Sequence record: OP380604.1
Strand: one strand, 5' to 3'
DNA: 64,000 nt
A model generated the notes under the pieces. The model had not been told where the DNA came from. It worked only from the letters and a program-made list of their open reading frames with translations, and did no database searches. Below are positions 4,480 to 52,106 of this stretch, one piece after another. Both the position numbers and the translations under genes were made by a program. The number at the start of each line of letters is the position of its first letter. The first letter of the stretch is position 1.

Positions 4480-6714
4480 ATGCTGGTAAGAAAATCAAGT
4501 GGTATAACTGAGAATTTTGATTCCAACAAGCTGTTGAAAATTCTTGGGTTCGCCACTGCTGGAACTCGAATCGATTCAAACGAAATCATGAGTGGTATTA
4601 TGCCTTCAATCACTGACGGCATGAGTACAAAAGACATTCAAAAGCTGGCAATCAAGTTTGCAGCGGATAGAATCTCTATTGAACAATCTGATTATCAATA
4701 TGTTTCCGCTCGTCTGCAAATGTACGCTATTCGCAAAGACGTTTATAATCAGTTTGATCCGATTCATCTGAAACGGCACACTCTGGACTTGGTACAAGAC
4801 GGCATCTATGATAAAGATCTTGTCTCTAAGTGGACAGACGAAGAATTTAATGAGCTGAATGCCTATATCAAGCATGAACGCGATTTTAATCTGGCTTATG
4901 CTGGTGTAATGCAATTCAAAGAAAAGTATTTGGCGAAAGATCGCAGTACCGGCGAATTGTACGAAACCCCGCAAATGTTGTATATGCTTGTTGCAATGTG
5001 CTTGCACCAAGACGAAAAAGCAGATAGAATCTCTAAAGTTAAAAACTTTTATGACGTAACTTCTTTGGGCAAACTGAGTCTGCCTACACCTATTCTTGCA
5101 GGTGTTCGTACTCCGACTCGTCAGTTTAGCTCATGCGTCAAGATTGAATGTGGTGATGAACTCGATAGCATTAACGCTACCGCAAGTTCAATCGTTGACT
5201 ATATCAGCAAACGAGCTGGTATCGGTATCAACGGTGGTGCTATTCGTGCCGAAGGCTCTCGCATTCGAAGTGGTGAAGTTCGTCACACTGGTATTATTCC
5301 TTTCTGGAAACATTTCCAGACTGCGGTAAAAAGTTGCTCACAGGGTGGTGTTCGCGGCGGTGCTGCTACACTTTACTACCCAATGTGGCATCTTGAAGTT
5401 GAAAAAATCCTTGTGCTGAAAAACAACAAGGGCGTGGAAGAAAATCGAATTCGTCAGCTTGACTACGGTATCCAAATCAACAAGCTGTTTTTCGAGCGTC
5501 TGAAAAATGACGACTATATCACGCTCTTTAGCCCAGACGTTCAAAACGGCGAGCTTTACGATCTGTTCTATCGCGATCCGGTGAAGTTCAAAGAAATGTA
5601 CGAAATGCTGGAAAACGAGCCTTGGTGTCGTAAGAAGCGTATCAAAGCTTCCGAGTTGTTCAATCTGTTCGCACAAGAAAGAACTGGCACCGGTCGCATC
5701 TATCCGATGTTCGTTGATAACGTTAACAGTGCTACTCCGTACAAAGAGCCGATTCGTATGGGTAATCTGTGTATCGAAATCGCTCTGCCGACTTATCCCG
5801 TTCATCGTGACGGTACCGGAGAGGTGGCGCTTTGCACCTTAGCAGCATATAATCTCGGTGCAATTGAGGGATATGAAGACTTCCTAAACGTTGCTCGCGC
5901 TGCTGTTCGCGCACTGGATAACTTGCTTGACTATCAGGATTATCCCGTTGTTCAAGCACTGGCAGCTAAGAAGCGTCGCGCATTGGGTATTGGTGTAACA
6001 AACTTTGCTTATTTCCTGGCGAAGAATTTTGTTAACTACTCTAGCGGCAATGCAAACAAGCTTGTTCACCGCACCATGGAAATGATGCAGTTTGCGAACT
6101 TGGTAGCGTCTATGGAGCTGGCGAAAGAACGCGGTGCAAACGAGTGGCATCATAAGACAAAATGGGCTGATGGCCTGCTGCCGATTGACTGGTATAACAA
6201 AAACGTTGATAATATCGTTCCGAATGATCTGAAAATGGATTGGGAATGGCTACGTTCTGAGATCAAAAAGCACGGATTGCGAAACGACACTCTAAGCGCA
6301 TTTATGCCCTGCGAGAGTAGTTCACAGATCACCAACAGCACAAACGGTATTGAGCCACCACGCGGTCTAGTGAGTACCAAGCAATCGAAAGATGGTGTCT
6401 TTAATCAGCTAGTGCCTGAGGTAGACATGCTTGGTAGCGAGTATGAAACAGCTTGGCAGATGACCAAACACGGCATGAAGGGTTACTTAGACATTGTAGC
6501 TATCATGCAGAAGTTTGTGGATCAAATGATTAGTGCGAATACTTATTATGATCCTGCTGTGTATCCGGGTGAGAAGATCCCGATGAAGGTTGTTCTGAAA
6601 GATATTTCAAGAGCACAGAAACACGGCGTTAAGTCTCTGTATTACTCAAACACTCGCGACGGTGCAGACGGCACAGAAGATACTTCTTCCGACTGCGAGA
6701 CGTGCAAGGTCTAA
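4480..6714 (+). CDS. nrdA: Class Ia ribonucleotide reductase alpha subunit
   Basis: N-terminal ATP cone, PTPILAGVRTPTRQFSSC, NLCIEI catalytic motif, C-terminal CETC; no intron or intein. Confidence 0.97.
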   Translation: MLVRKSSGITENFDSNKLLKILGFATAGTRIDSNEIMSGIMPSITDGMSTKDIQKLAIKFAADRISIEQSDYQYVSARLQMYAIRKDVYNQFDPIHLKRHTLDLVQDGIYDKDLVSKWTDEEFNELNAYIKHERDFNLAYAGVMQFKEKYLAKDRSTGELYETPQMLYMLVAMCLHQDEKADRISKVKNFYDVTSLGKLSLPTPILAGVRTPTRQFSSCVKIECGDELDSINATASSIVDYISKRAGIGINGGAIRAEGSRIRSGEVRHTGIIPFWKHFQTAVKSCSQGGVRGGAATLYYPMWHLEVEKILVLKNNKGVEENRIRQLDYGIQINKLFFERLKNDDYITLFSPDVQNGELYDLFYRDPVKFKEMYEMLENEPWCRKKRIKASELFNLFAQERTGTGRIYPMFVDNVNSATPYKEPIRMGNLCIEIALPTYPVHRDGTGEVALCTLAAYNLGAIEGYEDFLNVARAAVRALDNLLDYQDYPVVQALAAKKRRALGIGVTNFAYFLAKNFVNYSSGNANKLVHRTMEMMQFANLVASMELAKERGANEWHHKTKWADGLLPIDWYNKNVDNIVPNDLKMDWEWLRSEIKKHGLRNDTLSAFMPCESSSQITNSTNGIEPPRGLVSTKQSKDGVFNQLVPEVDMLGSEYETAWQMTKHGMKGYLDIVAIMQKFVDQMISANTYYDPAVYPGEKIPMKVVLKDISRAQKHGVKSLYYSNTRDGADGTEDTSSDCETCKV

Positions 6715-6762
6715 TATCAAGTCTATCACTAGGGGCTTCGGCCCCTATAACAAGGAATAAAA

Positions 6763-7893
6763 ATGGATACCGTATTTAATAAAAATGTAGTTGATCACAT
6801 GAAAGCGCCACTGTTCTTGGGCGAAGCTATGGGATTGGCTCGATATGAAACAGTAAAACACCCAGCGATTGATAAGCTTACCGAGAAACAGTTGAGCTTT
6901 TTCTGGCGTCCCGAAGAAGTGGATTTGTCCAAAGATGCAATCGACTACAATCAACTGAGTGAAGCCGAACAGCATGTTTTCACCCAGAATCTGAAATATC
7001 AAAGTCTGCTTGACTCCGTGCAGGGTCGCGCACCTAACTTGGTATTCTTGCCAATCGTGTCCGATGTTGCGCTTGAGACTTGGATCACTACTTGGAGTTT
7101 TAGTGAGACAATTCATAGCCGTTCTTATACTCACATCATGCGGAATATCTATGTTGATCCGTCTGCTGTGTTTGATAAGATTCTGCTTGACAGTAAGATC
7201 ATGGCACGTGCCACTTCTGTAACTCAGTATTACGATAACTTGATCAAAGAGTTGAAAACATACGATCTGGTATCACAGCCGGTATTCTCTCCGGAGTTGC
7301 GAATTGCACAACTGACCAAGGTCAAAGAAGCGTTGTATCTTGCAATGCACGCCGTAAACGCTTTGGAAGCAATTCGTTTTTATGTTAGCTTTGCTTGCAC
7401 CTTCTCGTTCGCTGAACGAGGTATCATGGAAGGCAATGCTAAGATCATGCGTCTGATTGCGCGGGATGAACAGCTTCACCTGAAAGGCACCCAGTATCTG
7501 ATCCGTGCTTGGCAGAATGCAGAAGATGATTCCGAAATGTACGAGATTGCTAAACGTCTCGAACACAAAGCGGTACAAATCTTCTTGGAAGTTGCTGAAC
7601 AAGAGAAAGACTGGGCAAGAGACTTGCTTGGTAATGTGACTATTCCTGGCCTGAGTCTATCTAGCATGTTGGATTACATCGATTATCTGACTGTAAGCCG
7701 TATGCGCTCTGCTGGTCTTCCTGCACCGGAAGAACTGAATACCAGTATGAAACACCCTCTGCCATGGATTCGCAAGTGGCTGAATAGTGATTCCGTTCAA
7801 GTCGCTGCCCAAGAGGCTGAGTTGTCTAGCTATCTGATTGGACAAGTTGATTCAACTCTCGATGATAGTTTCTTTGAAGAACTAGAAGTTTAA
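6763..7893 (+). CDS. nrdB: Class Ia ribonucleotide reductase beta subunit
   Basis: FFWRPEE, SETIHSRSY, EAIRFYVSFAC and RDEQLH di-iron ligands; uninterrupted. Confidence 0.97.
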   Translation: MDTVFNKNVVDHMKAPLFLGEAMGLARYETVKHPAIDKLTEKQLSFFWRPEEVDLSKDAIDYNQLSEAEQHVFTQNLKYQSLLDSVQGRAPNLVFLPIVSDVALETWITTWSFSETIHSRSYTHIMRNIYVDPSAVFDKILLDSKIMARATSVTQYYDNLIKELKTYDLVSQPVFSPELRIAQLTKVKEALYLAMHAVNALEAIRFYVSFACTFSFAERGIMEGNAKIMRLIARDEQLHLKGTQYLIRAWQNAEDDSEMYEIAKRLEHKAVQIFLEVAEQEKDWARDLLGNVTIPGLSLSSMLDYIDYLTVSRMRSAGLPAPEELNTSMKHPLPWIRKWLNSDSVQVAAQEAELSSYLIGQVDSTLDDSFFEELEV

Positions 7894-38425: not shown

Positions 38426-38911
38426 ATGAATGTTATTCCTGTAATCCGACTGCCTCATTATCTGCCTGAGTGGGAACTGCCCGCTTTCAAATCTGCCGAA
38501 GCCGCTGGTATCGATCTGCGAGCCGCTATCGGTGAAACTGTAGTTCTGAAACCGGGCGAAGATATCGTGATCCCGTCTGGCCTGAAAATGGATATTGGTG
38601 CTCTGCAACTCGCAAATGTGTTTCTCGATATCGGTGTTTATGGCTGCATTCTGCCGCGCTCCGGTCTGGGATTCAAGCATTATGTCCGTCTCGCTAATAC
38701 CGCTGGTGTTATCGACTCTGACTATCACGGCGAGATCATGATCAAGCTGCGTAACGAAGGAACTGACGATCTGGCTATCGTGCCGGGTGATCGTGTTGTG
38801 CAGATGGTATTTCATCTGTATGTTAAGGGATTCGAGCTAAAAGAAGTTTCTGAATTTTCACGTAACACCGAACGCGGCGAATCTGGATTCGGGAGTTCTG
38901 GCGTTAAATGA
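38426..38911 (+). CDS. dut: Trimeric dUTPase
   Basis: AAGIDL, PRSGLG, GVIDSDYHGEI, GDRVVQ, RGESGFGSSG. Confidence 0.96.
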   Translation: MNVIPVIRLPHYLPEWELPAFKSAEAAGIDLRAAIGETVVLKPGEDIVIPSGLKMDIGALQLANVFLDIGVYGCILPRSGLGFKHYVRLANTAGVIDSDYHGEIMIKLRNEGTDDLAIVPGDRVVQMVFHLYVKGFELKEVSEFSRNTERGESGFGSSGVK

Positions 38912-39978: not shown

Positions 39979-40479
39979 ATGTTTCCACTTGATGTTCGTC
40001 TTGCTCCTGTGAATCGCATCGATTGTGAGCGAGAATTTCAGAAAGCATACAACTGGGAAAATCTGAACGAAGAACAGCGTTTCATTGTTCGCGGTGGCTG
40101 CTGGAATACTTGGGTAATGGGCTGGAATGCCGCTCAAAATCTCAAGTCAGTTGACCCCATCGCCAAAGTGTTGGAAACGTCTCAGATTGCAGATGTACAA
40201 CGTAGCCAACACTATGTACTGGGCAAGTGTACGGAAGAGCTTGGTGAAGCGGCTACCGTGATTAACAAGCCACATAAGCAACACCCAGAGCCACTGCATT
40301 GTGAGATCGCAGATCTGATTATCAGCGGCGTCGACCTTGTTTACGTTGAGTTGTACGAGCGACTTTCAAAAGAACTAGGTACCAAGGTAGATGAAGCACT
40401 TGTTGCCGACAAAGCGCGTGAAATGATCGTTAATGCTATTATCAGCAAAAACGAAAAGTGGAAGAAACAGGTAATCTAA
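39979..40479 (+). CDS. MazG-like nucleotide pyrophosphohydrolase with N-terminal extension
   Basis: KCTEELGEAA...EIADL all-alpha NTP-PPase motif. Confidence 0.7.
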   Translation: MFPLDVRLAPVNRIDCEREFQKAYNWENLNEEQRFIVRGGCWNTWVMGWNAAQNLKSVDPIAKVLETSQIADVQRSQHYVLGKCTEELGEAATVINKPHKQHPEPLHCEIADLIISGVDLVYVELYERLSKELGTKVDEALVADKAREMIVNAIISKNEKWKKQVI

Positions 40480-43323: not shown

Positions 43324-43410
43324 ATGTCAACAATGAGAGTAAACAATGAAAATCCATCAAGAACAAACCGAGATTTACGGAAGCGCGGCAGATCAAAGCT
43401 CTGGCTTTAA
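43324..43410 (+). CDS. Putative leader ORF (28 aa) overlapping the rIIA start out of frame
   Basis: GAGGA-7 nt-ATG downstream of promoter TTGACT-17-TAATCT; MSTMRVNNENPSRTNRDLRKRGRSKLWL*. Confidence 0.4.
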   Translation: MSTMRVNNENPSRTNRDLRKRGRSKLWL

Positions 43411-45544
43411 GATTCTGGCGAGTGCAAAAGCATTCAAGATTCTGTCCAGCTCTTTGTACAAATACAAGCAACGTGCGATCATTCGTGAACTATGTTGCAA
43501 CGCCGTAGATGGCCACATCGCTCTGAAACGAACTGGCGTAGAAGTTAGCAAGACTTTCGACGTCACTCTGCCGAGCATGTTGAATCAACAATTCAGCGTC
43601 CGTGATTACGGTATTGGTCTGAGTGAGGAAGATGTTACCGGACTTTACTGCACTTACTTTGCAAGTACCAAGTCCAACAGCAACGACGAAATTGGTGGTT
43701 TCGGTCTGGGATGTAAATCTCCGTTTGCATACACTGATACTTTCACCGTTACTTCTTGGTTCGGTGGAAAGAAAATGATTTTCAGCGCATTCATGAAAAA
43801 CGGCGAGCCGAATATCATGAAAATGTATGAGGAAGATTCTTCCGAACACACTGGCGTTGAAGTTACTGTTCCCGTGTCTAACGACATGAATACTTGGGAA
43901 GCAGAAGCCAAGCGCGTATTCTGTTCGTTTGGTGAGTATCGTCCTCGTTTCATTGGCAAGCCGATCACTGTAAACTACCTTGAGTTTGACAAAGACGGTA
44001 TTTGTAAGATTGACGGCAATTACTACTCACAACACGGCAACGGTGTATTCGCTGTTATGGGTGGTGTAGTGTATCCGATTCCGGCTGAATACTGGAACAA
44101 CACCATGATTGGGTTGTATGCCGCTCGTAAGACCTATTATGTTCGCTTTGAAATTGGCGAACTGGATATGACTCCGAGCCGTGAAGAACTATCATTGGAT
44201 CCGGACACCATCGCGTCAATCAATAAGCGGATGAAACTTTTGAACAAAGTTCACGAGGTAGAGATTGACGACGCATTCAAAAAATGCAAAGATATTCGTG
44301 AGCTGCATTCACACATGATGGGAAGATTCCCAAGCGAAGTGTGGCAACGTATGATTCAAAAGCGTGTGTTTCGCAAGAAAACTATCGAGCAGTGGAAAGC
44401 ACAACTGAGTTCATATACTCGTCCTAATGCGGATGTTCCTATCGTTCGTGCGAGTGTCGGTGCGGGTACCGTTCGCAAAGTTAAACAGCGTTGGTCAAAC
44501 GGCGTAGATATTAGCTTTGGCTCAAGTTTCCGTCCGGTGATCATCAACGATCTGAAAACTGGTGCTGCCGAAGTTATGTACGGACTTGATCGTCTGAACA
44601 AATTCCGAGTTGAAGGTGCATTCGTTTTTGATGTATTCTCCAACGTAAAAGTTGACGAGAAAGATCCGAAAAGCACTACCGTTGGTAAAGCGAATCGCGA
44701 AAACATGGTAGAGTACCTGAAATATTTCCCGACTCGAATGAAAGACGGTAAAGTCATTCTGTTGTCTAAAGTACGTGCGGAAGTTCTGAAAGAAATGAAG
44801 GACAAAGGCTTTATTCAGCCTAAGAAGCGTACCGGTAAGGCAACTAACGTTGTAAAATACGAGAACGGCGTTACATCCGAAGTCCAGATGTATGTCGAAG
44901 ATATCGATGATCTGAAAGATGTTATCTGGTGTGCCCATGAATATGGATATCTCAAGATTGCAACTCCGACGATCACTACCGAGACTCTGAAAAACGGCAA
45001 GACTCGCGAAAAGTACGATAACTGGAAAACTGTTACCACGTTCAATGATCGAATCATTAAAACTTGGTCTAAACTGGAAGGTAAAACTGTTTATGTTTTC
45101 AAGTCCCAACACTGGGCACGGGCAGATAAAAACAAGAATATCGAGCAGTTTAACGAGTCCATGGTTACCGATTATGTCGTGGATCAGATGGACAAAGTCA
45201 CTATGGATCACTTCGGCGTTACTGTGAATGAGCGTTGGATCAACCGTTTGGCATCTAACCCAATCACTAAGCCGTTGACTGACGATCTGTGTGGTCATAA
45301 TGGTCAACGTAGCGATATCGGTGAATTCCTGCTGTTGGTTCGTGATTCTCGTTCCGACTTGAAAGACGCCAAACAACGCACTCTTAACGAAGTGGTATCC
45401 AAACTCGTTAAGGAAGCAACTGACCGCGCTTATGCGAAAGTTCGCGAATTTGAGAAGAATAACCCTCTGATCATTGGGTATCTCAATCAGATCTATGACC
45501 TGAAAGATGCAATCGCTAAAAACATCGTAGAAGTCGCAAAATAA
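43346..45544 (+). CDS. rIIA: RIIA protein (N-terminal GHKL/HATPase domain)
   Basis: F.ILSSSLY..K.RAIIREL..NA.D.H, VRDYGIG, STK..SN..IGGFGLG.KSPF.Y. Confidence 0.95.
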   Translation: MKIHQEQTEIYGSAADQSSGFKILASAKAFKILSSSLYKYKQRAIIRELCCNAVDGHIALKRTGVEVSKTFDVTLPSMLNQQFSVRDYGIGLSEEDVTGLYCTYFASTKSNSNDEIGGFGLGCKSPFAYTDTFTVTSWFGGKKMIFSAFMKNGEPNIMKMYEEDSSEHTGVEVTVPVSNDMNTWEAEAKRVFCSFGEYRPRFIGKPITVNYLEFDKDGICKIDGNYYSQHGNGVFAVMGGVVYPIPAEYWNNTMIGLYAARKTYYVRFEIGELDMTPSREELSLDPDTIASINKRMKLLNKVHEVEIDDAFKKCKDIRELHSHMMGRFPSEVWQRMIQKRVFRKKTIEQWKAQLSSYTRPNADVPIVRASVGAGTVRKVKQRWSNGVDISFGSSFRPVIINDLKTGAAEVMYGLDRLNKFRVEGAFVFDVFSNVKVDEKDPKSTTVGKANRENMVEYLKYFPTRMKDGKVILLSKVRAEVLKEMKDKGFIQPKKRTGKATNVVKYENGVTSEVQMYVEDIDDLKDVIWCAHEYGYLKIATPTITTETLKNGKTREKYDNWKTVTTFNDRIIKTWSKLEGKTVYVFKSQHWARADKNKNIEQFNESMVTDYVVDQMDKVTMDHFGVTVNERWINRLASNPITKPLTDDLCGHNGQRSDIGEFLLLVRDSRSDLKDAKQRTLNEVVSKLVKEATDRAYAKVREFEKNNPLIIGYLNQIYDLKDAIAKNIVEVAK

Positions 45545-45667: not shown

Positions 45668-46984
45668 ATGGCTAAACTGACTGAACAACAAAAAGCACGT
45701 ATTCTGGCTGGCACTCTGGGTCGTGTCGTACTCGCTCGCGAACTGGGTATCAAAGAATCCGAAGCTCGCAAAATGATCGAACTCGTTAAAGCTGAGGCCG
45801 AACGAGAAGCAAAACAGAAAACCGGTGGTGTGACTGAGGCAATGCGCCAAGAAATCGTCGCTGGTAAACTGGGTCGTGTGGCTCTGTCCAAGAAACTGGG
45901 CATCAAAGAGCACGAAGCGCGTAAGATCATTGAAGCAATTCGTTCCGAAAAGCCGAAAACTGCTGATGTTCAAAAGCCTGTTGCAAAAGTCGCACCGGTT
46001 GCACCGAAAGCAGAAGTAGAGAAGAAAGAGGATCATCTGGGTGCTCGATTTCGTGAAACCGACAAGCGAGCAGACGAGCGAGACGCCAAAATCGTTGAAC
46101 TCTATTCAACCGGAGAGTACAAGTCACAAAAGACTGTTGCCGCGCTGGTTGGTTGCTCTGAAAGCACTGTTGGCGAAGTTCTGAAACGTGCTGGTGTAAA
46201 AGCTCGCCGTCCGGGGTCTCCTGCTGCTAAAGTTGAGCCGAAAGTTGAAGCTCCGAAAGAACTCAAGTGGTTCGCTTCTACCAAGTTCATCAACATCATG
46301 GCAGACGGCAAGACTTTCACCGCTGATAGCAGCCACGAAAGCTTCCGCAAGGCGCTGGATCTGTGTATCGCTGGTGATGTTCTGAAAGCTCTGGGACTGA
46401 TCAACGTTGCTAAGGGTGTTAGCTCTTATGCTGGTACCAATATCGAGATCAAAAACGATACTGTGTATTTCAAAGGCATGGAAGTTGGCAACTCTGTTGT
46501 TGAACGTATCATCCAGTCCATGCACGAAGGCAAGCCGTTCGAAAAGTGGGTACGTTTCCTTGAGAAGCTGCTGGCTAACCCGAACAAGCGAGTTGTTGGT
46601 GAACTGTTCAAGTTCCTGGAAGCAAAAGATATCGTCGTAAACGATAAAGGTGATGTTGTTGCTTACCGTCGTGTTCGTAACGACTACAAAGATTTCCACT
46701 CTGGGACTGTACTCTACAAAGTCGGCACAGAAGTCAAGATGGATCGATCTAAGTGTGACGAAAGTTCCGCAACCTGTTCTCGTGGTCTGCACCTGTGTAG
46801 CAAAGGATATCTGCCTCACTTTCACGGCGGTAGCGGGAAGATTCTGGAATGTACTGTTAGCCCAACTGACATTGTATCTATTCCGGCTGACTACGGCTCC
46901 TCTAAGATGCGTACTTGTAAGATGTTCGTTCTCCGAGAAATGACCGAAGCACAAGTAAAAGCACTGATTGGAAACAAGAACTAA
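45668..46984 (+). CDS. rIIB: RIIB protein with duplicated N-terminal HTH-like repeats
   Basis: C-terminal NP...V.ELF.FL...I...G...AY..VR.DY.D.HSG...C.RGLH domain; likely start at ATG 45668 after AAGGA (45650 is possible). Confidence 0.9.
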   Translation: MAKLTEQQKARILAGTLGRVVLARELGIKESEARKMIELVKAEAEREAKQKTGGVTEAMRQEIVAGKLGRVALSKKLGIKEHEARKIIEAIRSEKPKTADVQKPVAKVAPVAPKAEVEKKEDHLGARFRETDKRADERDAKIVELYSTGEYKSQKTVAALVGCSESTVGEVLKRAGVKARRPGSPAAKVEPKVEAPKELKWFASTKFINIMADGKTFTADSSHESFRKALDLCIAGDVLKALGLINVAKGVSSYAGTNIEIKNDTVYFKGMEVGNSVVERIIQSMHEGKPFEKWVRFLEKLLANPNKRVVGELFKFLEAKDIVVNDKGDVVAYRRVRNDYKDFHSGTVLYKVGTEVKMDRSKCDESSATCSRGLHLCSKGYLPHFHGGSGKILECTVSPTDIVSIPADYGSSKMRTCKMFVLREMTEAQVKALIGNKN

Positions 46985-46989
46985 TCACT

Positions 46990-47015
46990 AAAAGCCACCT
47001 TCGGGTGGCTTTTTT
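46990..47015 (+). terminator. Terminator (CUUCGG)
   Basis: AAAAGCCACC-TTCG-GGTGGCTTTTTT. Confidence 0.85.
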
Positions 47016-47086
47016 ATTTCCAAAATTGCTTGCTAACTAAATCCAATCCAGTATACTAAGTTCACACCAACAAGAGGTATAAAGTA

Positions 47087-47644
47087 ATGAAAAAGTTCAA
47101 TGACTGCATCGAAGTAGAATCCGGCGCTCGTGGCAAATCCGACGCGGCTTTCGTATGCTTCTACTGTGATAAAGTGCAGCCGTATATCAACTCCACGGAC
47201 CCTTCTTTCCCAGAAGACAAGAAACACGTTTGGGCTCATAAAATTCTGCTGAACGTTCGCTGGGATTCTCGCTTTGGCTTCCCCGGTGGTATGGTAGATG
47301 AAGGTGAGACTTTGATTGAAGCAGCGGTGCGTGAGTGCAAAGAAGAAATCGGATACACTGTTAATCCTGATCATCTTCTGCATCTTTGCACTCACAAGAT
47401 CCCAGAAAGCGGTATGCATTGCCACCTGTACATGTGTCGCGTTCCTGAGGAAGAGCTGTACACTATGCAGCGACTCGCTATGGATGCTTGCCATAGTCGG
47501 ATTGAAGCGTTTGGCAACGCGGTGGCTCATTTGACTCCTCCTACCGTAAAGCAAATGAAACATGCAAACTGTGCCCGTACTGTAAAAGCAGAACTCATGG
47601 AAGTATTTGATTTCCTGGGCGTTGACTATGACTGGAGCAACTGA
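47087..47644 (+). CDS. Nudix hydrolase, NUDT16-like subfamily
   Basis: Nudix box GGMVDEGETLIEAAVRECKEEIG preceded by ILLNVRWDSRFGFPGG. Confidence 0.85.
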   Translation: MKKFNDCIEVESGARGKSDAAFVCFYCDKVQPYINSTDPSFPEDKKHVWAHKILLNVRWDSRFGFPGGMVDEGETLIEAAVRECKEEIGYTVNPDHLLHLCTHKIPESGMHCHLYMCRVPEEELYTMQRLAMDACHSRIEAFGNAVAHLTPPTVKQMKHANCARTVKAELMEVFDFLGVDYDWSN

Positions 47645-47645
47645 T

Positions 47646-47861
47646 ATGAAAATCACTGTTCCACATATGTACGATCTGATCCGAGCGTCTATTCAACAAA
47701 CAAATGATAGCTATCGTTTCGGACAAGCGTTGTTCAATAATCTGCCACAAGAACTAGCAGATTCAATTCGTGGTACCGATAAAGACTTCTTTTATTGGGA
47801 CAATAAGCGTCAACAAGAGATCATTCAATACTGTTATGATCATATGACGCTTCCAAAGTAA
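47646..47861 (+). CDS. Hypothetical protein
   Basis: Start probably ATG 47646; YRFGQALFNNL small phage family. Confidence 0.6.
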   Translation: MKITVPHMYDLIRASIQQTNDSYRFGQALFNNLPQELADSIRGTDKDFFYWDNKRQQEIIQYCYDHMTLPK

Positions 47862-48191: not shown

Positions 48192-48704
48192 ATGAAAACT
48201 AAAATGTATATCGGTAATCTTGGTAGTCGTTATACCTACATCGGTTCACTGTTTCCGAACAAAGAGGGTATCATTGAGTTCAAGAATTGCCAAAATGAAA
48301 AAATTGGCAGTGTGAATCACGATCTGACTACTCCAGGTTTCTATCTGATTGGCGTTTCTGCTGAGTCAACTCTTACTCTTGAGATCGCTACCGTGAACCA
48401 CGTCGGTATTCAGAAACGTAAGTCCGGTTTCAAAGAAATCCTGTCTCGACTGAACAATCCTCGTACCGAACAAAACAAAGCTCTGGGAGATTTTCTGTGT
48501 AAACGTGCTACCGATATCTTCAATAATCAACGTCTGATTCGTGCTTTGCGTGAGGTTAACGCTCGCCATCGTGTATACTTCATGACTTATGCGCAAATGC
48601 GAGATCTACTGGGAATCGAAGAATACAGCGCCAAAAACAACGGACTGGCTATGATTACCGAGCTGCGCACCAAATATGAATTCTTCGGCCGTCAGAAATC
48701 CTAG
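48192..48704 (+). CDS. ndd: Nucleoid disruption protein Ndd-like
   Basis: DLTTPGFYL...HVGIQKRKSGFKEILS resembles T4 Ndd DILSKPGFYF...YVGNQRSKQGFSAVLS; syntenic between rIIB and 52. Confidence 0.7.
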   Translation: MKTKMYIGNLGSRYTYIGSLFPNKEGIIEFKNCQNEKIGSVNHDLTTPGFYLIGVSAESTLTLEIATVNHVGIQKRKSGFKEILSRLNNPRTEQNKALGDFLCKRATDIFNNQRLIRALREVNARHRVYFMTYAQMRDLLGIEEYSAKNNGLAMITELRTKYEFFGRQKS

Positions 48705-48762: not shown

Positions 48763-50079
48763 ATGCAAGTAACAAAACGTGGAATCTCAAGTCTGGTAAA
48801 CAATGAAGCTAAAGAATTTGCAATGTACACAATCGAGGAACGCGCTCTTCCGTCTATGATTGACGGGTTGAAGCCAGTTCAACGATATGTGCTCTTTAGC
48901 GTATTGAAAAACGCCGGACGTGAGTTCAAGAAAAATGCCGCGATTGCTGGTGTTATTTCTGAATACGGATACAATCACGGCGAAATGGCTGCGATGGATG
49001 CCGCTTGTTTGATGGCTTCTACTTGGAACAACAACTTCCCTGTTATTCAGGGTCGTGGTAACTTCGGTTGTCGTGCTGTTCAAGAAGGCGCCGCGGCTCG
49101 TTACATCTTCTGTAGCAAACACGAAAAATTCGAATCTATGTTCAAGGACATGGAGTTGCTGGAAGAATCTACTGCCGACGGCTCTATTCTACCGCGTTAT
49201 TATCTGCCGATTCTGCCAACTGTATTGCTTAACGGTGTTAGCGGTATCGCTACCGGCTTTGCCACAAAGATCATGCCGCATAACGTTCAAAGTGTTGCAA
49301 AATGTGTTGAACAAGTGCTAAAATCTGGCAAGTGCGACGAACCCGAGATTCAATTTCCTAAATTCTTCGGTAAGATTCTGCCGATTGAAGGTGAAACTCA
49401 GTCTTGGAAAGTAGAAGGCGATTATGAGCTTAGTGGCAAAACTAAGTTGATTATCAATGAATTGCCTCCGAAGTATGATCGTTTGAAGTACGTCACACAC
49501 CTCAACAAACTTGTTGAAACTGACAAGATTGTGGGTTATGATGAATCCAAGATGAAAGATCGAGAGTTTTGCTTTAAGGTAACACTCAAGCGTGATTTTG
49601 ATGTTAGCCACGAAAACATCATCAAGGTGTTTAAGCTATCTCAGAACGTGAGTCAATATATCCGTGTTATCGATGAAAACGGCAATTTGAAGCCGTACGA
49701 TAAGGCATCCGATCTGATTGTTGATTTCGTGAATTTTAGATTTAATGTCTTGCAAAAGCGAATCGACAATGCTATCATTGCCACACGTGAGAAACTTGAT
49801 TTCGCACAAGCAAAGGTAGATTTCATCAAGCTAGTTCTGGCTGATAAGATTGTTTTCAATCGTCAGACTCGGAAACAGGTAATCGAACAGATCAATGCTT
49901 TCGATAATCTGAAAACCTATGCAGATCAACTGGTACAAATGAATCTGTACCATATGACCGAGGACGAAGTATCCAAGCTTGAAAAGCAAGTTGTGGAGCT
50001 TCAAAAAGAACATGACTTCTGGAAGACAACTACTCCCAAGAAGCAATACCAATCTGATATTAAGGAATTTTTGAAATGA
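48763..50079 (+). CDS. 52: Type II topoisomerase medium subunit gp52
   Basis: RALPSMIDGLKPVQR, YNHGE, GRGNFG and AARY catalytic Tyr; promoter GTTGAC-17-TATAAT at 48706-48734. Confidence 0.96.
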   Translation: MQVTKRGISSLVNNEAKEFAMYTIEERALPSMIDGLKPVQRYVLFSVLKNAGREFKKNAAIAGVISEYGYNHGEMAAMDAACLMASTWNNNFPVIQGRGNFGCRAVQEGAAARYIFCSKHEKFESMFKDMELLEESTADGSILPRYYLPILPTVLLNGVSGIATGFATKIMPHNVQSVAKCVEQVLKSGKCDEPEIQFPKFFGKILPIEGETQSWKVEGDYELSGKTKLIINELPPKYDRLKYVTHLNKLVETDKIVGYDESKMKDREFCFKVTLKRDFDVSHENIIKVFKLSQNVSQYIRVIDENGNLKPYDKASDLIVDFVNFRFNVLQKRIDNAIIATREKLDFAQAKVDFIKLVLADKIVFNRQTRKQVIEQINAFDNLKTYADQLVQMNLYHMTEDEVSKLEKQVVELQKEHDFWKTTTPKKQYQSDIKEFLK

Positions 50080-51791: not shown

Positions 51792-52106
51792 TTATTTCTG
51801 ACTTTCAATAACAGCCTGCAATTTATTGATCGACACATTTAAATTATTAAGTGTCTCGTTCATCTTCTCCGTTACTTCGGTAGTCTTTTCTTGTTGCTTT
51901 TGTAGATATTCCAGTTTGGTGTCTTGAGTTACGTTAATGCTATCGCTTTGACTAACCCTTTGTTCCACTCTGTCCATTCTATCAATAACTTTGTTTATCG
52001 CTTCTTCTGCCGAGCCAATACGATATCCACCAATGAAGACTCCACCAACTACGGTGCCTATCGCGATCCAATCGCTTAGGCTTAACTTGGAAGTAATCAT
52101 ATTCAA
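51792..52106 (-). CDS. Single-TM coiled-coil lysis-cassette protein (holin- or spanin-like)
   Basis: N-terminal TM helix followed by a coiled coil; directly downstream of the endolysin, at the T4 t position. Confidence 0.5.
   Translation of the reverse strand: MNMITSKLSLSDWIAIGTVVGGVFIGGYRIGSAEEAINKVIDRMDRVEQRVSQSDSINVTQDTKLEYLQKQQEKTTEVTEKMNETLNNLNVSINKLQAVIESQK

Follow-up and report, generated by a model that had tools for sequence, protein, structure and literature searches.

Human NUDT16 and Xenopus X29 are known as U8 small nucleolar RNA (snoRNA)-decapping enzymes, which also hydrolyse inosine di- and triphosphates and their deoxy forms ((d)IDP and (d)ITP), ADP-ribose (ADPr) and metabolite caps, and the human protein is well studied with respect to nucleotide-pool sanitation, RNA decapping and the removal of protein ADPr. 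The family has been called metazoan or 'likely limited to' animals (PMC2566886, PMC12210691), and no papers on phage or bacterial NUDT16-like proteins were found in the searchable literature. A second reference point is NudE.1 of phage T4 (gene e.1), a stand-alone Nudix enzyme that hydrolyses nicotinamide adenine dinucleotide (NAD), flavin adenine dinucleotide (FAD), Ap3A, ADPr and NAD-caps. The gene considered here lies at positions 47087-47644 of a stretch of 64,000 nucleotides (the window), which corresponds, with 100% identity and identical coordinates, to the first 64 kb of record OP380604.1, Aeromonas phage avDM12-TAAL (Straboviridae, Chrysonvirus). Its product, a 'hypothetical protein' in the avDM12-TAAL record (UYD60073.1), has orthologs of 88-99% identity in phages Ah1, AsFcp_1/2/4, PX29, phiAS5, phiWae14 and Aeh1, and the gene is named nudE in Aeh1, Ah1, PX29 and phiAS5. 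From the sequence data presented below, we conclude with high confidence that it encodes a complete member of the NUDT16-like (PF22327) family, which would be catalytically competent by sequence criteria.

47087-47644, + strand: coding sequence of the NUDT16-family Nudix hydrolase, stop codon included (ATG start, 185 residues)

Identification of the protein as a NUDT16-like Nudix hydrolase

A first-pass annotation of the window had described the product as a Nudix enzyme resembling metazoan NUDT16 from end to end; the open reading frame (ORF) that it delimited was recovered exactly, with the same strand, ATG and length, and the four peptides that it quoted are all present (residues 53-71, 113-124, 135-143 and 169-179). 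With the single sequence as the query, the Pfam model PF22327 (Nudt16-like) was matched with 51.3 bits (cut-off, 27), against 46.7 bits for the generic PF00293, and phrog_9999, 'nudix hydrolase', was matched over the full protein length (E=1.8e-82). The single-sequence search of the PDB returned human NUDT16 with an E-value of approximately 1e-5, over residues 51-143 only, and ranked a generic Nudix protein higher. Since a word-indexed protein search yielded just two matches, namely the PX29 ortholog and one generic Nudix protein, an exhaustive HMMER search was needed. A scan of 1.84 billion representatives identified 894 relatives with E<=1e-3, of which 95 had E<=1e-10. Many of these proteins have approximately 175 residues, their alignment running from residue 9 or so to residue 175 or so, and PF22327 was matched by all of the 100 best.

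A first profile of 100 sequences included metazoan-type members (with PF22327 E-values down to 9e-58), which raised a concern of circularity. A non-circular profile was built from 32 relatives aligned from the N-terminus, which are not animal NUDT16 proteins, as their best PF22327 E-value is only 8e-22. Against the PDB, the latter profile found human NUDT16 with E=1.2e-20 (77 bits, profile positions 47-169 of 173), X29 with 1.2e-19 and TIRR/syndesmos with approximately 1e-12, the best generic Nudix protein scoring 1.2e-11 over the Nudix box only. A metazoan-type alignment of five NUDT16 sequences, seeded with a Plectus protein named U8 snoRNA-decapping enzyme in UniRef, was matched in hhalign with a probability of 99.9% and E=1.1e-32, residues 18-185 aligning on residues 15-187 of the 202-residue nematode NUDT16, at a pairwise identity to animal NUDT16 of only approximately 20-27%.

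The AlphaFold2 model, which is that of a monomer, has a predicted local distance difference test (pLDDT) score of 95.4 and a predicted template-modelling (pTM) score of 0.91. When it was compared with the PDB by Foldseek, the top 39 entries were all NUDT16, X29 or TIRR/syndesmos (E-values from 7e-12 to 1e-9; template-modelling score normalized to the query (TMq), 0.65-0.76; 170-192 columns), and the next in rank was a CoA pyrophosphatase with a template-modelling (TM) score of 0.47. The N-terminal strand, the Nudix core and the C-terminal base-binding helix of the NUDT16 fold are all present in the model. Family enzymes are homodimers, in which the partner subunit completes the entrance to each active site. 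Membership of the NUDT16 family is therefore upheld by PF22327 and by the profile, profile-profile and fold comparisons, and the likeness 'end to end' is right at the level of profile and fold, while the single sequence aligns over its central part only.

The assignment is already implicit in the databases, where PF22327 hits for such phage proteins are precomputed, and where both the PX29 ortholog (in UniRef) and a protein of Aeromonas phage 4_4572 (in BFVD) carry the name 'U8 snoRNA-decapping enzyme'.

Relation to T4 NudE and to the animal enzymes

The T4-type NudE of phage ST0, the gene of which lies beside that of lysozyme e, has neither a PF22327 match nor NUDT16 among its PDB matches, and it aligns with the avDM12-TAAL protein over 66 Nudix-box residues only. 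Matches found by tblastn to hundreds of T4-like coliphage NudE genes are likewise confined to residues 58-122 or thereabouts (E-values from 1e-4 to 6). The avDM12-TAAL gene is found between rIIB and an Ndd-like gene and is not syntenic with T4 e.1; among the Aeh1 genes beside e there is no Nudix gene, the neighbours being DUF7338 and an unrelated small ORF. No T4-type NudE was found in the avDM12-TAAL genome, in which the gene under study is the sole stand-alone Nudix gene. On these sequence comparisons, the 'nudE' label of the orthologs is a propagated misnomer. The first-pass annotation had itself named placement among generic bacterial Nudix or T4 NudE proteins as what, combined with a lack of the proposed activities, would speak against it; the comparison with ST0 NudE, PF22327, Foldseek and hhalign all lead away from such a placement.

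The specifically metazoan character suggested for the protein is another matter. It scores 226 bits with a hidden Markov model (HMM) of phage-type sequences versus 62 bits with the metazoan-type HMM, and the latter beats the former in just 4 of the 150 best representatives, four further flagged sequences being added NUDT16 comparators. In a bootstrapped neighbour-joining (NJ) tree, the Aeh1-like clade was recovered in all of 200 replicates and a jumbo-phage clade in 163, and the protein fell into a small clade with metazoan NUDT16 in a single one. The tree derives from a query-biased sample, with metazoan monophyly in 100 of the 200 replicates and saturated distances (2.05 between the window protein and the metazoan enzymes, 2.04 between it and T4-type NudE), and was used only for the non-pairing with metazoan NUDT16; as its deep branches are poorly resolved and the sample is biased, the direction of transfer is not to be read from it. 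No sign of capture from an animal was seen in the HMM comparison or the NJ tree. As judged from these sequences, the protein is not nested among animal ones but is part of a large branch of phage and bacterial proteins, which comprises at least approximately 130 distinct clusters at 50% identity. Thus, of the original description, the NUDT16 family is confirmed by the profile and fold comparisons, but the protein is not specifically animal-like and does not join the metazoan clade.

Active site and base pocket

The roles of individual residues were taken from the structures of NUDT16 in complex with inosine monophosphate (IMP; PMC4485890) and with ADPr (PMC6459841), mapped through the alignments and counted in a domain alignment of 152 sequences. 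The relevant sites in the window are as follows.

47150-47152, + strand: codon of Phe22 in the N-terminal strand, aligned to the purine-stacking His24 of human NUDT16
47258-47287, + strand: R58-G67 (R-W-D...G-F-P-G), equivalents of human Arg50, Asp52, Phe57 and Gly59
47288-47356, + strand: Nudix box G68-Y90, with the catalytic/metal-binding Glu83, Glu86 and Glu87
47504-47506, + strand: codon of Glu140, a family-specific metal-site glutamate outside the Nudix box, equivalent to human Glu136
47573-47593, + strand: C-terminal helix A163-E169, lining the base pocket

In human NUDT16, Arg50 and Asp52 bind phosphate, the backbone of Phe57 in the GFP motif reads the 6-oxo group of the purine and Gly59 is a metal ligand (PMC4485890), and both the metal-site role of Glu136 and the stacking of the purine on His24 are known from the two complexes (PMC4485890, PMC6459841). 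Human Glu76, Glu79 and Glu80 correspond to E83, E86 and E87, which are invariant (152/152). Arg50 is R58 (Arg in 151 of the 152 family members), Asp52 is D60 (Asp in 131) and Glu136 is found as Glu140 (Glu in 149; T4-type NudE has Asp there, at a site beyond the Nudix box, where the alignment is unreliable). The GFP motif is present as F65, P66 and G67, equivalent to Phe57, Pro58 and Gly59 (Phe in 129 sequences, Pro in 91). As far as the alignments tell, the catalytic and phosphate-binding residues are all retained.

The base pocket presents a different picture. Position 22 is Phe in 137 of the 152 sequences and His in the 6 metazoan-type ones only. In the C-terminal helix, human Ile164, Ser166 and Gln170 are replaced by Ala163, Thr165 and Glu169, respectively, the last position being Glu in 126 sequences and Gln in 15, with Glu also in nematode NUDT16. 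In the animal enzymes Gln170 reads N1/N6 of the purine. Human Phe61, at the active site's 'mouth', corresponds to Met69, a variable position where Lys is commonest. An aromatic stacker and a hydrogen-bonding side chain are kept in the pocket, with a chemistry unlike that in the animal proteins (Phe for His24, Glu for Gln170).

Relatives, gene neighbourhoods and two pocket types

Gene context was compared in a sample of approximately 15 loci. A profile search of viral contigs gave 9 loci, 5 of them new, and a narrow-motif search of genomes returned generic Nudix proteins with matches to the Nudix box only and no further cellular member. In jumbo phages RaK2, BF, CBB and Turkey5, which represent four genera, a homolog with 30-33% identity is encoded directly downstream of Sir2, with genes for NAMPT, an NMNAT-like cytidyltransferase and a small 'RNA ligase' upstream and for PIN-PhoH downstream. 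The BF and CBB homologs, of approximately 300 residues, are Nudix-cREC fusions, and that of CBB is the best viral structural match (TMq, 0.83). For this sirtuin-centred module a function in the processing of RNA 2'-phosphate ends and of ADPr>P has been proposed (Iyer et al. 2022), in a paper that nowhere mentions NUDT16 and does not tie the Nudix component of the module to it.

Two types of pocket can be distinguished. In the Sir2-linked clade, and in the homolog present in the Lahexavirus Aeromonas phages, Ala, Gly or Thr stands in place of the GFP Phe, and Trp or Tyr is found at the position numbered 24 in the window protein; at these diagnostic positions the latter has Phe65 and Cys24. The GFP motif is kept in the Aeh1-like clade, the nearest metagenomic relatives, the HD and Ham1 fusions discussed below and the metazoan enzymes. 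The remodelling of the base pocket suggests that the substrate of the Sir2-linked clade differs from that of the Aeh1-like clade. Homologs are also encoded on many uncultured large phage contigs, with NAMPT 3-5 kb away in two of them, both of GFP type. Besides that of avDM12-TAAL, nine phage loci of GFP type were examined, and in none of them was Sir2, cREC or 2H detected at a distance of up to 6 kb from the gene. On two IMG/VR contigs (236 kb and 395 kb), the match to the query is confined to the homolog's N-terminal half and the score with the family HMM is poor; these copies may be divergent or incomplete.

Among the cellular members, P0074, encoded at positions 6001-7176 of a locus in the bacterial metagenome-assembled genome GCA_964451885.1, is a fusion of a Ham1 ITP/XTP pyrophosphatase with a NUDT16-like domain. 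Its gene is flanked by those of adenylosuccinate synthetase and SAICAR synthetase, and the protein looks, from its domains and setting, like a cellular 'double' sanitizer of inosine nucleotides; in the NJ tree it stands close to metazoan NUDT16, as one of the nearest neighbours that are not themselves metazoan. A 312-residue form (P0018) is found on contigs of more than 1 Mb that are cellular or probably cellular. The NUDT16-like domain is also found fused with HD domains, in both orders, and, in one case, with an NMNAT-like domain.

Proposed function and mechanism

By analogy with NUDT16, the physiological role of the avDM12-TAAL enzyme may be the clean-up of 6-oxopurine nucleotides, with conversion of (d)IDP and (d)ITP to (d)IMP, an assignment that we prefer but hold only tentatively. 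In line with the solved NUDT16 complexes, the purine base would lie buried with Phe22 on one side and the C-terminal helix (Ala163, Thr165, Glu169) on the other, the GFP backbone would read the 6-position of the purine and Arg58 would hold the alpha-phosphate, while Mg2+ bound to Glu83, Glu86, Glu87 and Glu140 would activate a water molecule for the cleavage of the pyrophosphate. A nucleoside monophosphate would be the product, and the remainder of the substrate would face the solvent. Together with the phage dUTPase, the enzyme would act while the flux of nucleotides is very high during infection, removing (d)IDP and (d)ITP, and inosine nucleotides produced by adenosine-deaminase defences of the host would be drained incidentally. 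Like NUDT16, it is probably promiscuous.

The GFP motif was tied to the preference for 6-oxo purines by Tresaugues et al., and (d)IDP are the best substrates of NUDT16 (PMC4485890). The same substrates are favoured for the phage enzyme because its type of pocket is common to the ITPase-fused homolog and to animal NUDT16 (with P0074 it has in common Phe22, GFP and Glu169, positions 163 and 165 holding comparable small or hydroxylated residues, Ala and Thr versus Val and Ser), because the clade found in an ADPr context, namely the Sir2-linked one, has another pocket, and because the gene sits in an early block with genes for dUTPase and replication proteins (dUTPase, primase, topoisomerase and rIIA/B). 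The nearness of P0074 to metazoan NUDT16 in the NJ tree, and the phage's own dNMP kinase, described below, are counted in favour as well.

Several observations weigh against this assignment. The argument from fusion depends on one bacterial protein, P0074. The side chain of the GFP Phe is only indirect evidence, as it is a backbone amide that contacts the 6-oxo group, and the two changes in the pocket (His to Phe and Gln to Glu) mean that substrate specificity may differ from that of the animal enzymes. The presence of NAMPT 3-5 kb from two GFP-type relatives, and of NAMPT and an NMNAT-Nudix protein in avDM12-TAAL itself, points to NAD or ADPr chemistry. Because the phage has no T4-type NudE, the protein may fill the role of NudE in the hydrolysis of NAD and caps. 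The local context is unspecific, the only tightly linked gene being a clade-specific ORF of 71 residues. Finally, no activity data for any phage member were found in the searchable literature.

(d)IDP and (d)ITP are the nucleotides through which the deaminase-based defences Kongming, RADAR and Cad1 operate, and Kongming is triggered by phage deoxynucleoside monophosphate (dNMP) kinases, one of which is encoded by avDM12-TAAL (161,860-162,546); a tie between such defences and the dNMP kinase and Nudix genes of this phage is one that we only infer. A bolder and, taken as a whole, unlikely proposal is that the GFP-type phage enzymes are an early counter-defence that acts on (d)IDP and (d)ITP against Kongming dITP signalling, RADAR and Cad1, and, at the same time, that animal NUDT16 descended from the phage and bacterial branch. 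Alarm or toxic pools of inosine nucleotides, built from the phage's own nucleotide-kinase flux, would be drained in this version of the mechanism.

A close rival to the clean-up of inosine nucleotides, possible if not very likely, is that the enzyme hydrolyses ADPr, ADPr-cyclic-phosphate, NAD(H) or ADPr-based immune signals to AMP and a phosphoribosyl product, in which case it might act as a partner of the phage NAD-salvage genes in NAD+-centred conflicts. The Sir2-adjacent homologs of the four jumbo-phage genera, with their NAMPT, NMNAT-like, RNA ligase and PIN-PhoH neighbours and the cREC fusions of BF and CBB, agree with such chemistry, as does the ADPr>P processing predicted for their module by Iyer et al., but the remodelled pocket of that clade is not found in the avDM12-TAAL protein, and searches by tblastn of all five pieces of the record detected no homologs of Sir2, cREC, 2H or PIN-PhoH. 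The NAMPT genes near two GFP-type homologs and the single NMNAT-like fusion also speak for a link with NAD salvage. In avDM12-TAAL there are exactly two Nudix genes, that at 47087-47644 and that of the NMNAT-Nudix protein (85,499-86,554), which together with NAMPT (196,853-198,298) is the gene pair described in the literature for the NAD-reconstitution pathway NARP2. The two NAD-salvage genes are, however, 38 kb and 150 kb distant from the gene under study, and the NMNAT-Nudix protein already provides a Nudix domain, as in the NadM-type adenylyltransferase fusions of NAD salvage. Human NUDT16 does bind and cleave ADPr, with the adenine buried, but its Km for ADPr is high (837 uM; PMC6459841).

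Removal of NAD or other caps from RNA, also put forward in the first-pass annotation, stays a live and close, though not very likely, rival. According to this explanation the enzyme decaps RNA 5'-ends (with NAD, FAD, dephospho-CoA or similar caps, on host or phage RNA) as a non-orthologous replacement of T4 NudE.1. X29 and NUDT16 decap RNA, mammalian Nudt16 acts on metabolite caps (PMC2566886, PMC7337524) and T4 NudE.1 hydrolyses NAD and NAD-caps. With no T4-type NudE next to the lysozyme gene or in the rest of the genome, the present protein is left as the only stand-alone Nudix enzyme to fill such a role, the relatives carry the nudE label, and an early gene position would suit a takeover of host RNA. 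However, no RNA-metabolism gene is linked, the similarity to T4-type NudE is confined to the Nudix box, and the acidic character of the protein (isoelectric point, 5.65; 28 acidic versus 20 basic residues) speaks weakly against an RNA-binding surface.

A counter-defence that strips ADPr from modified DNA, RNA or proteins, and thus opposes DarT-type or PARP-like toxins, is very unlikely. Human NUDT16 processes protein-linked ADPr, the distal ribose of which is solvent-exposed (PMC6459841), and the fold and the catalytic site are conserved in the phage protein. The 'mouth' residue, Met in place of the human Phe61, is nevertheless at a variable position, no ADP-ribosylation-related gene was found linked in the GFP-type loci examined or in the genome scan, and the only match in a PADLOC scan, PDC-S07, spans just the Nudix-box region. 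A Nudix cut of an ADP-ribosylated target leaves phosphoribose attached, so that the target would not be restored, which further weakens the explanation. This part of the first-pass annotation has thus found little specific support, with no Sir2, cREC or 2H partner in the genome and with the ADPr context belonging to the clade with the other pocket.

The idea of an ordinary T4 NudE ortholog, or of a generic MutT-like Nudix protein with a superficial likeness to NUDT16, may be dismissed, despite the name chosen by the curators of Aeh1, Ah1, PX29 and phiAS5 and the generic Nudix protein that tops the single-sequence PDB search, as it is contradicted by the profile, profile-profile and fold searches, which favour NUDT16 by wide margins, by the limited match with ST0 NudE and by the lack of synteny with T4 e.1.

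The locus

The gene is part of a long series of + strand genes, within which possible signals for its expression were sought.

+ strand, first part of the gene order: gp41 helicase, gp61.1, primase, dUTPase (38426-38911), DexA, three small ORFs, gp39, two small ORFs
+ strand, second part: rIIA (43346-45544), rIIB (45668-46984), the Nudix gene, the 71-residue ORF
+ strand, third part: Ndd-like gene (48192-48704), gp52 (48763-50079), several small ORFs, asiA
46990-47019, + strand: intrinsic-terminator-like hairpin (10 pairs and a T run) directly 3' of rIIB, between the rIIB transcript and the Nudix gene
47030-47057, + strand: weak sigma-70-like promoter match (9 of 12 positions), a consensus match only
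47072-47077, + strand: Shine-Dalgarno-like AAGAGG, 9 nucleotides 5' of the ATG
47646-47861, + strand: 71-residue ORF, starting 2 nucleotides past the Nudix stop codon

Little weight is given to the sigma-70-like site, since the promoter scan of the region was no better than that of shuffled sequences (7 matches versus 5.5 +/- 2.5). The 71-residue ORF, which is probably co-transcribed with the Nudix gene, has no Pfam match; it is kept (71-97% identity) in the Aeh1-like group only and shows no homology with the small ORFs found 3' of the Nudix homolog in other phages. A conserved two-gene module formed by the Nudix gene and this ORF was, therefore, considered and rejected. On the opposite strand, an ORF of 207 residues (47033-47656, - strand) spans the entire Nudix gene; it is an unsupported, mechanical ORF and is annotated in no relative. 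The 185-residue Nudix protein contains 9 cysteines, unusually many for a small cytoplasmic enzyme, and Cys24 is variable.

Late genes on the - strand (a lysozyme-like gene and tail fibres) begin beyond approximately 52 kb, and the sign of the guanine-cytosine (GC) skew switches at about 51800-52100, where the + strand early genes, the last of which is asiA, meet them. The products of rIIA, rIIB, the Ndd-like gene and the gene for topoisomerase subunit gp52 are 'hypothetical protein' entries in avDM12-TAAL, the orthologs being named in the Aeh1 RefSeq record. For the ORF at 39979-40479, the Aeh1 ortholog is labelled 'MazG-like pyrophosphatase'; the label is unsupported here, as no Pfam match was obtained at E<=0.01.

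Significance and comparison with known systems

On the sequence evidence, the gene adds a new and uncharacterized protein to a known family, and the base pocket is consistently altered in the branch to which it belongs. T4-like Aeromonas phages thus conserve, among their early genes, a structurally complete and catalytically intact-looking version of NUDT16, which represents an uncharacterized class of phage enzymes for nucleotide processing, placed where phages meet bacterial immunity based on NAD, ADPr or inosine. Within the branch there are two types of pocket, of which one is firmly tied to Sir2 in jumbo phages, and the branch offers a concrete handle on the origin of NUDT16; were the bolder proposal to be true, animal NUDT16, so far held to be an animal invention, would stem from a phage and bacterial branch. 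A propagated mis-annotation, 'nudE', is also corrected.

With human NUDT16 and Xenopus X29, the phage protein has in common PF22327, the fold from the N-terminal strand to the C-terminal helix (TM, 0.65-0.76), the Nudix-box glutamates, the extra metal-site Glu (human Glu136, Glu140 here), the Arg50/Asp52 pair and the GFP motif. It differs from them in having Phe for His24, Glu for Gln170, Ala for Ile164 and Met for Phe61, in being acidic and only approximately 20-27% identical and in clustering with metazoans in 1/200 replicates; it is, moreover, the product of a viral early gene acting in a bacterial host that has neither the 7-methylguanosine (m7G) cap nor snoRNA. TIRR/syndesmos (NUDT16L1) is alike in fold and family (Foldseek TM, 0.64-0.71; profile E-value, approximately 1e-12), but syndesmos is not a functional Nudix enzyme (PMC2566886), whereas the phage protein retains every catalytic residue.

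T4 NudE.1 resembles the protein in being the stand-alone Nudix enzyme of a T4-like phage and in the name given by curators, and a shared or overlapping role is possible. The T4-type protein, however, is of another Nudix family: it lacks PF22327, has RppH/MutT-like relatives in the PDB, is 152 residues long and has no matching N- and C-terminal elements, and the T4 gene is found beside that of lysozyme e, whereas that of avDM12-TAAL is beside rIIB.

The Sir2-linked Nudix proteins of jumbo phages (RaK2, BF, CBB, GAP32 and 121Q-like) belong to the same family, with approximately 30-33% identity, the catalytic residues, Phe22 and Glu169. They differ in being always Sir2-adjacent and often cREC-fused, in lacking the GFP Phe and in having Trp or Tyr at position 24, while avDM12-TAAL has no Sir2, cREC or 2H. 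Outside phages, the Ham1-NUDT16-like fusion P0074 corresponds to the phage protein in pocket residues, with Phe22, GFP, Glu169 and the complete catalytic set all present, although P0074 is a two-domain cellular protein encoded in a purine-biosynthesis neighbourhood and the phage enzyme a single-domain early protein.

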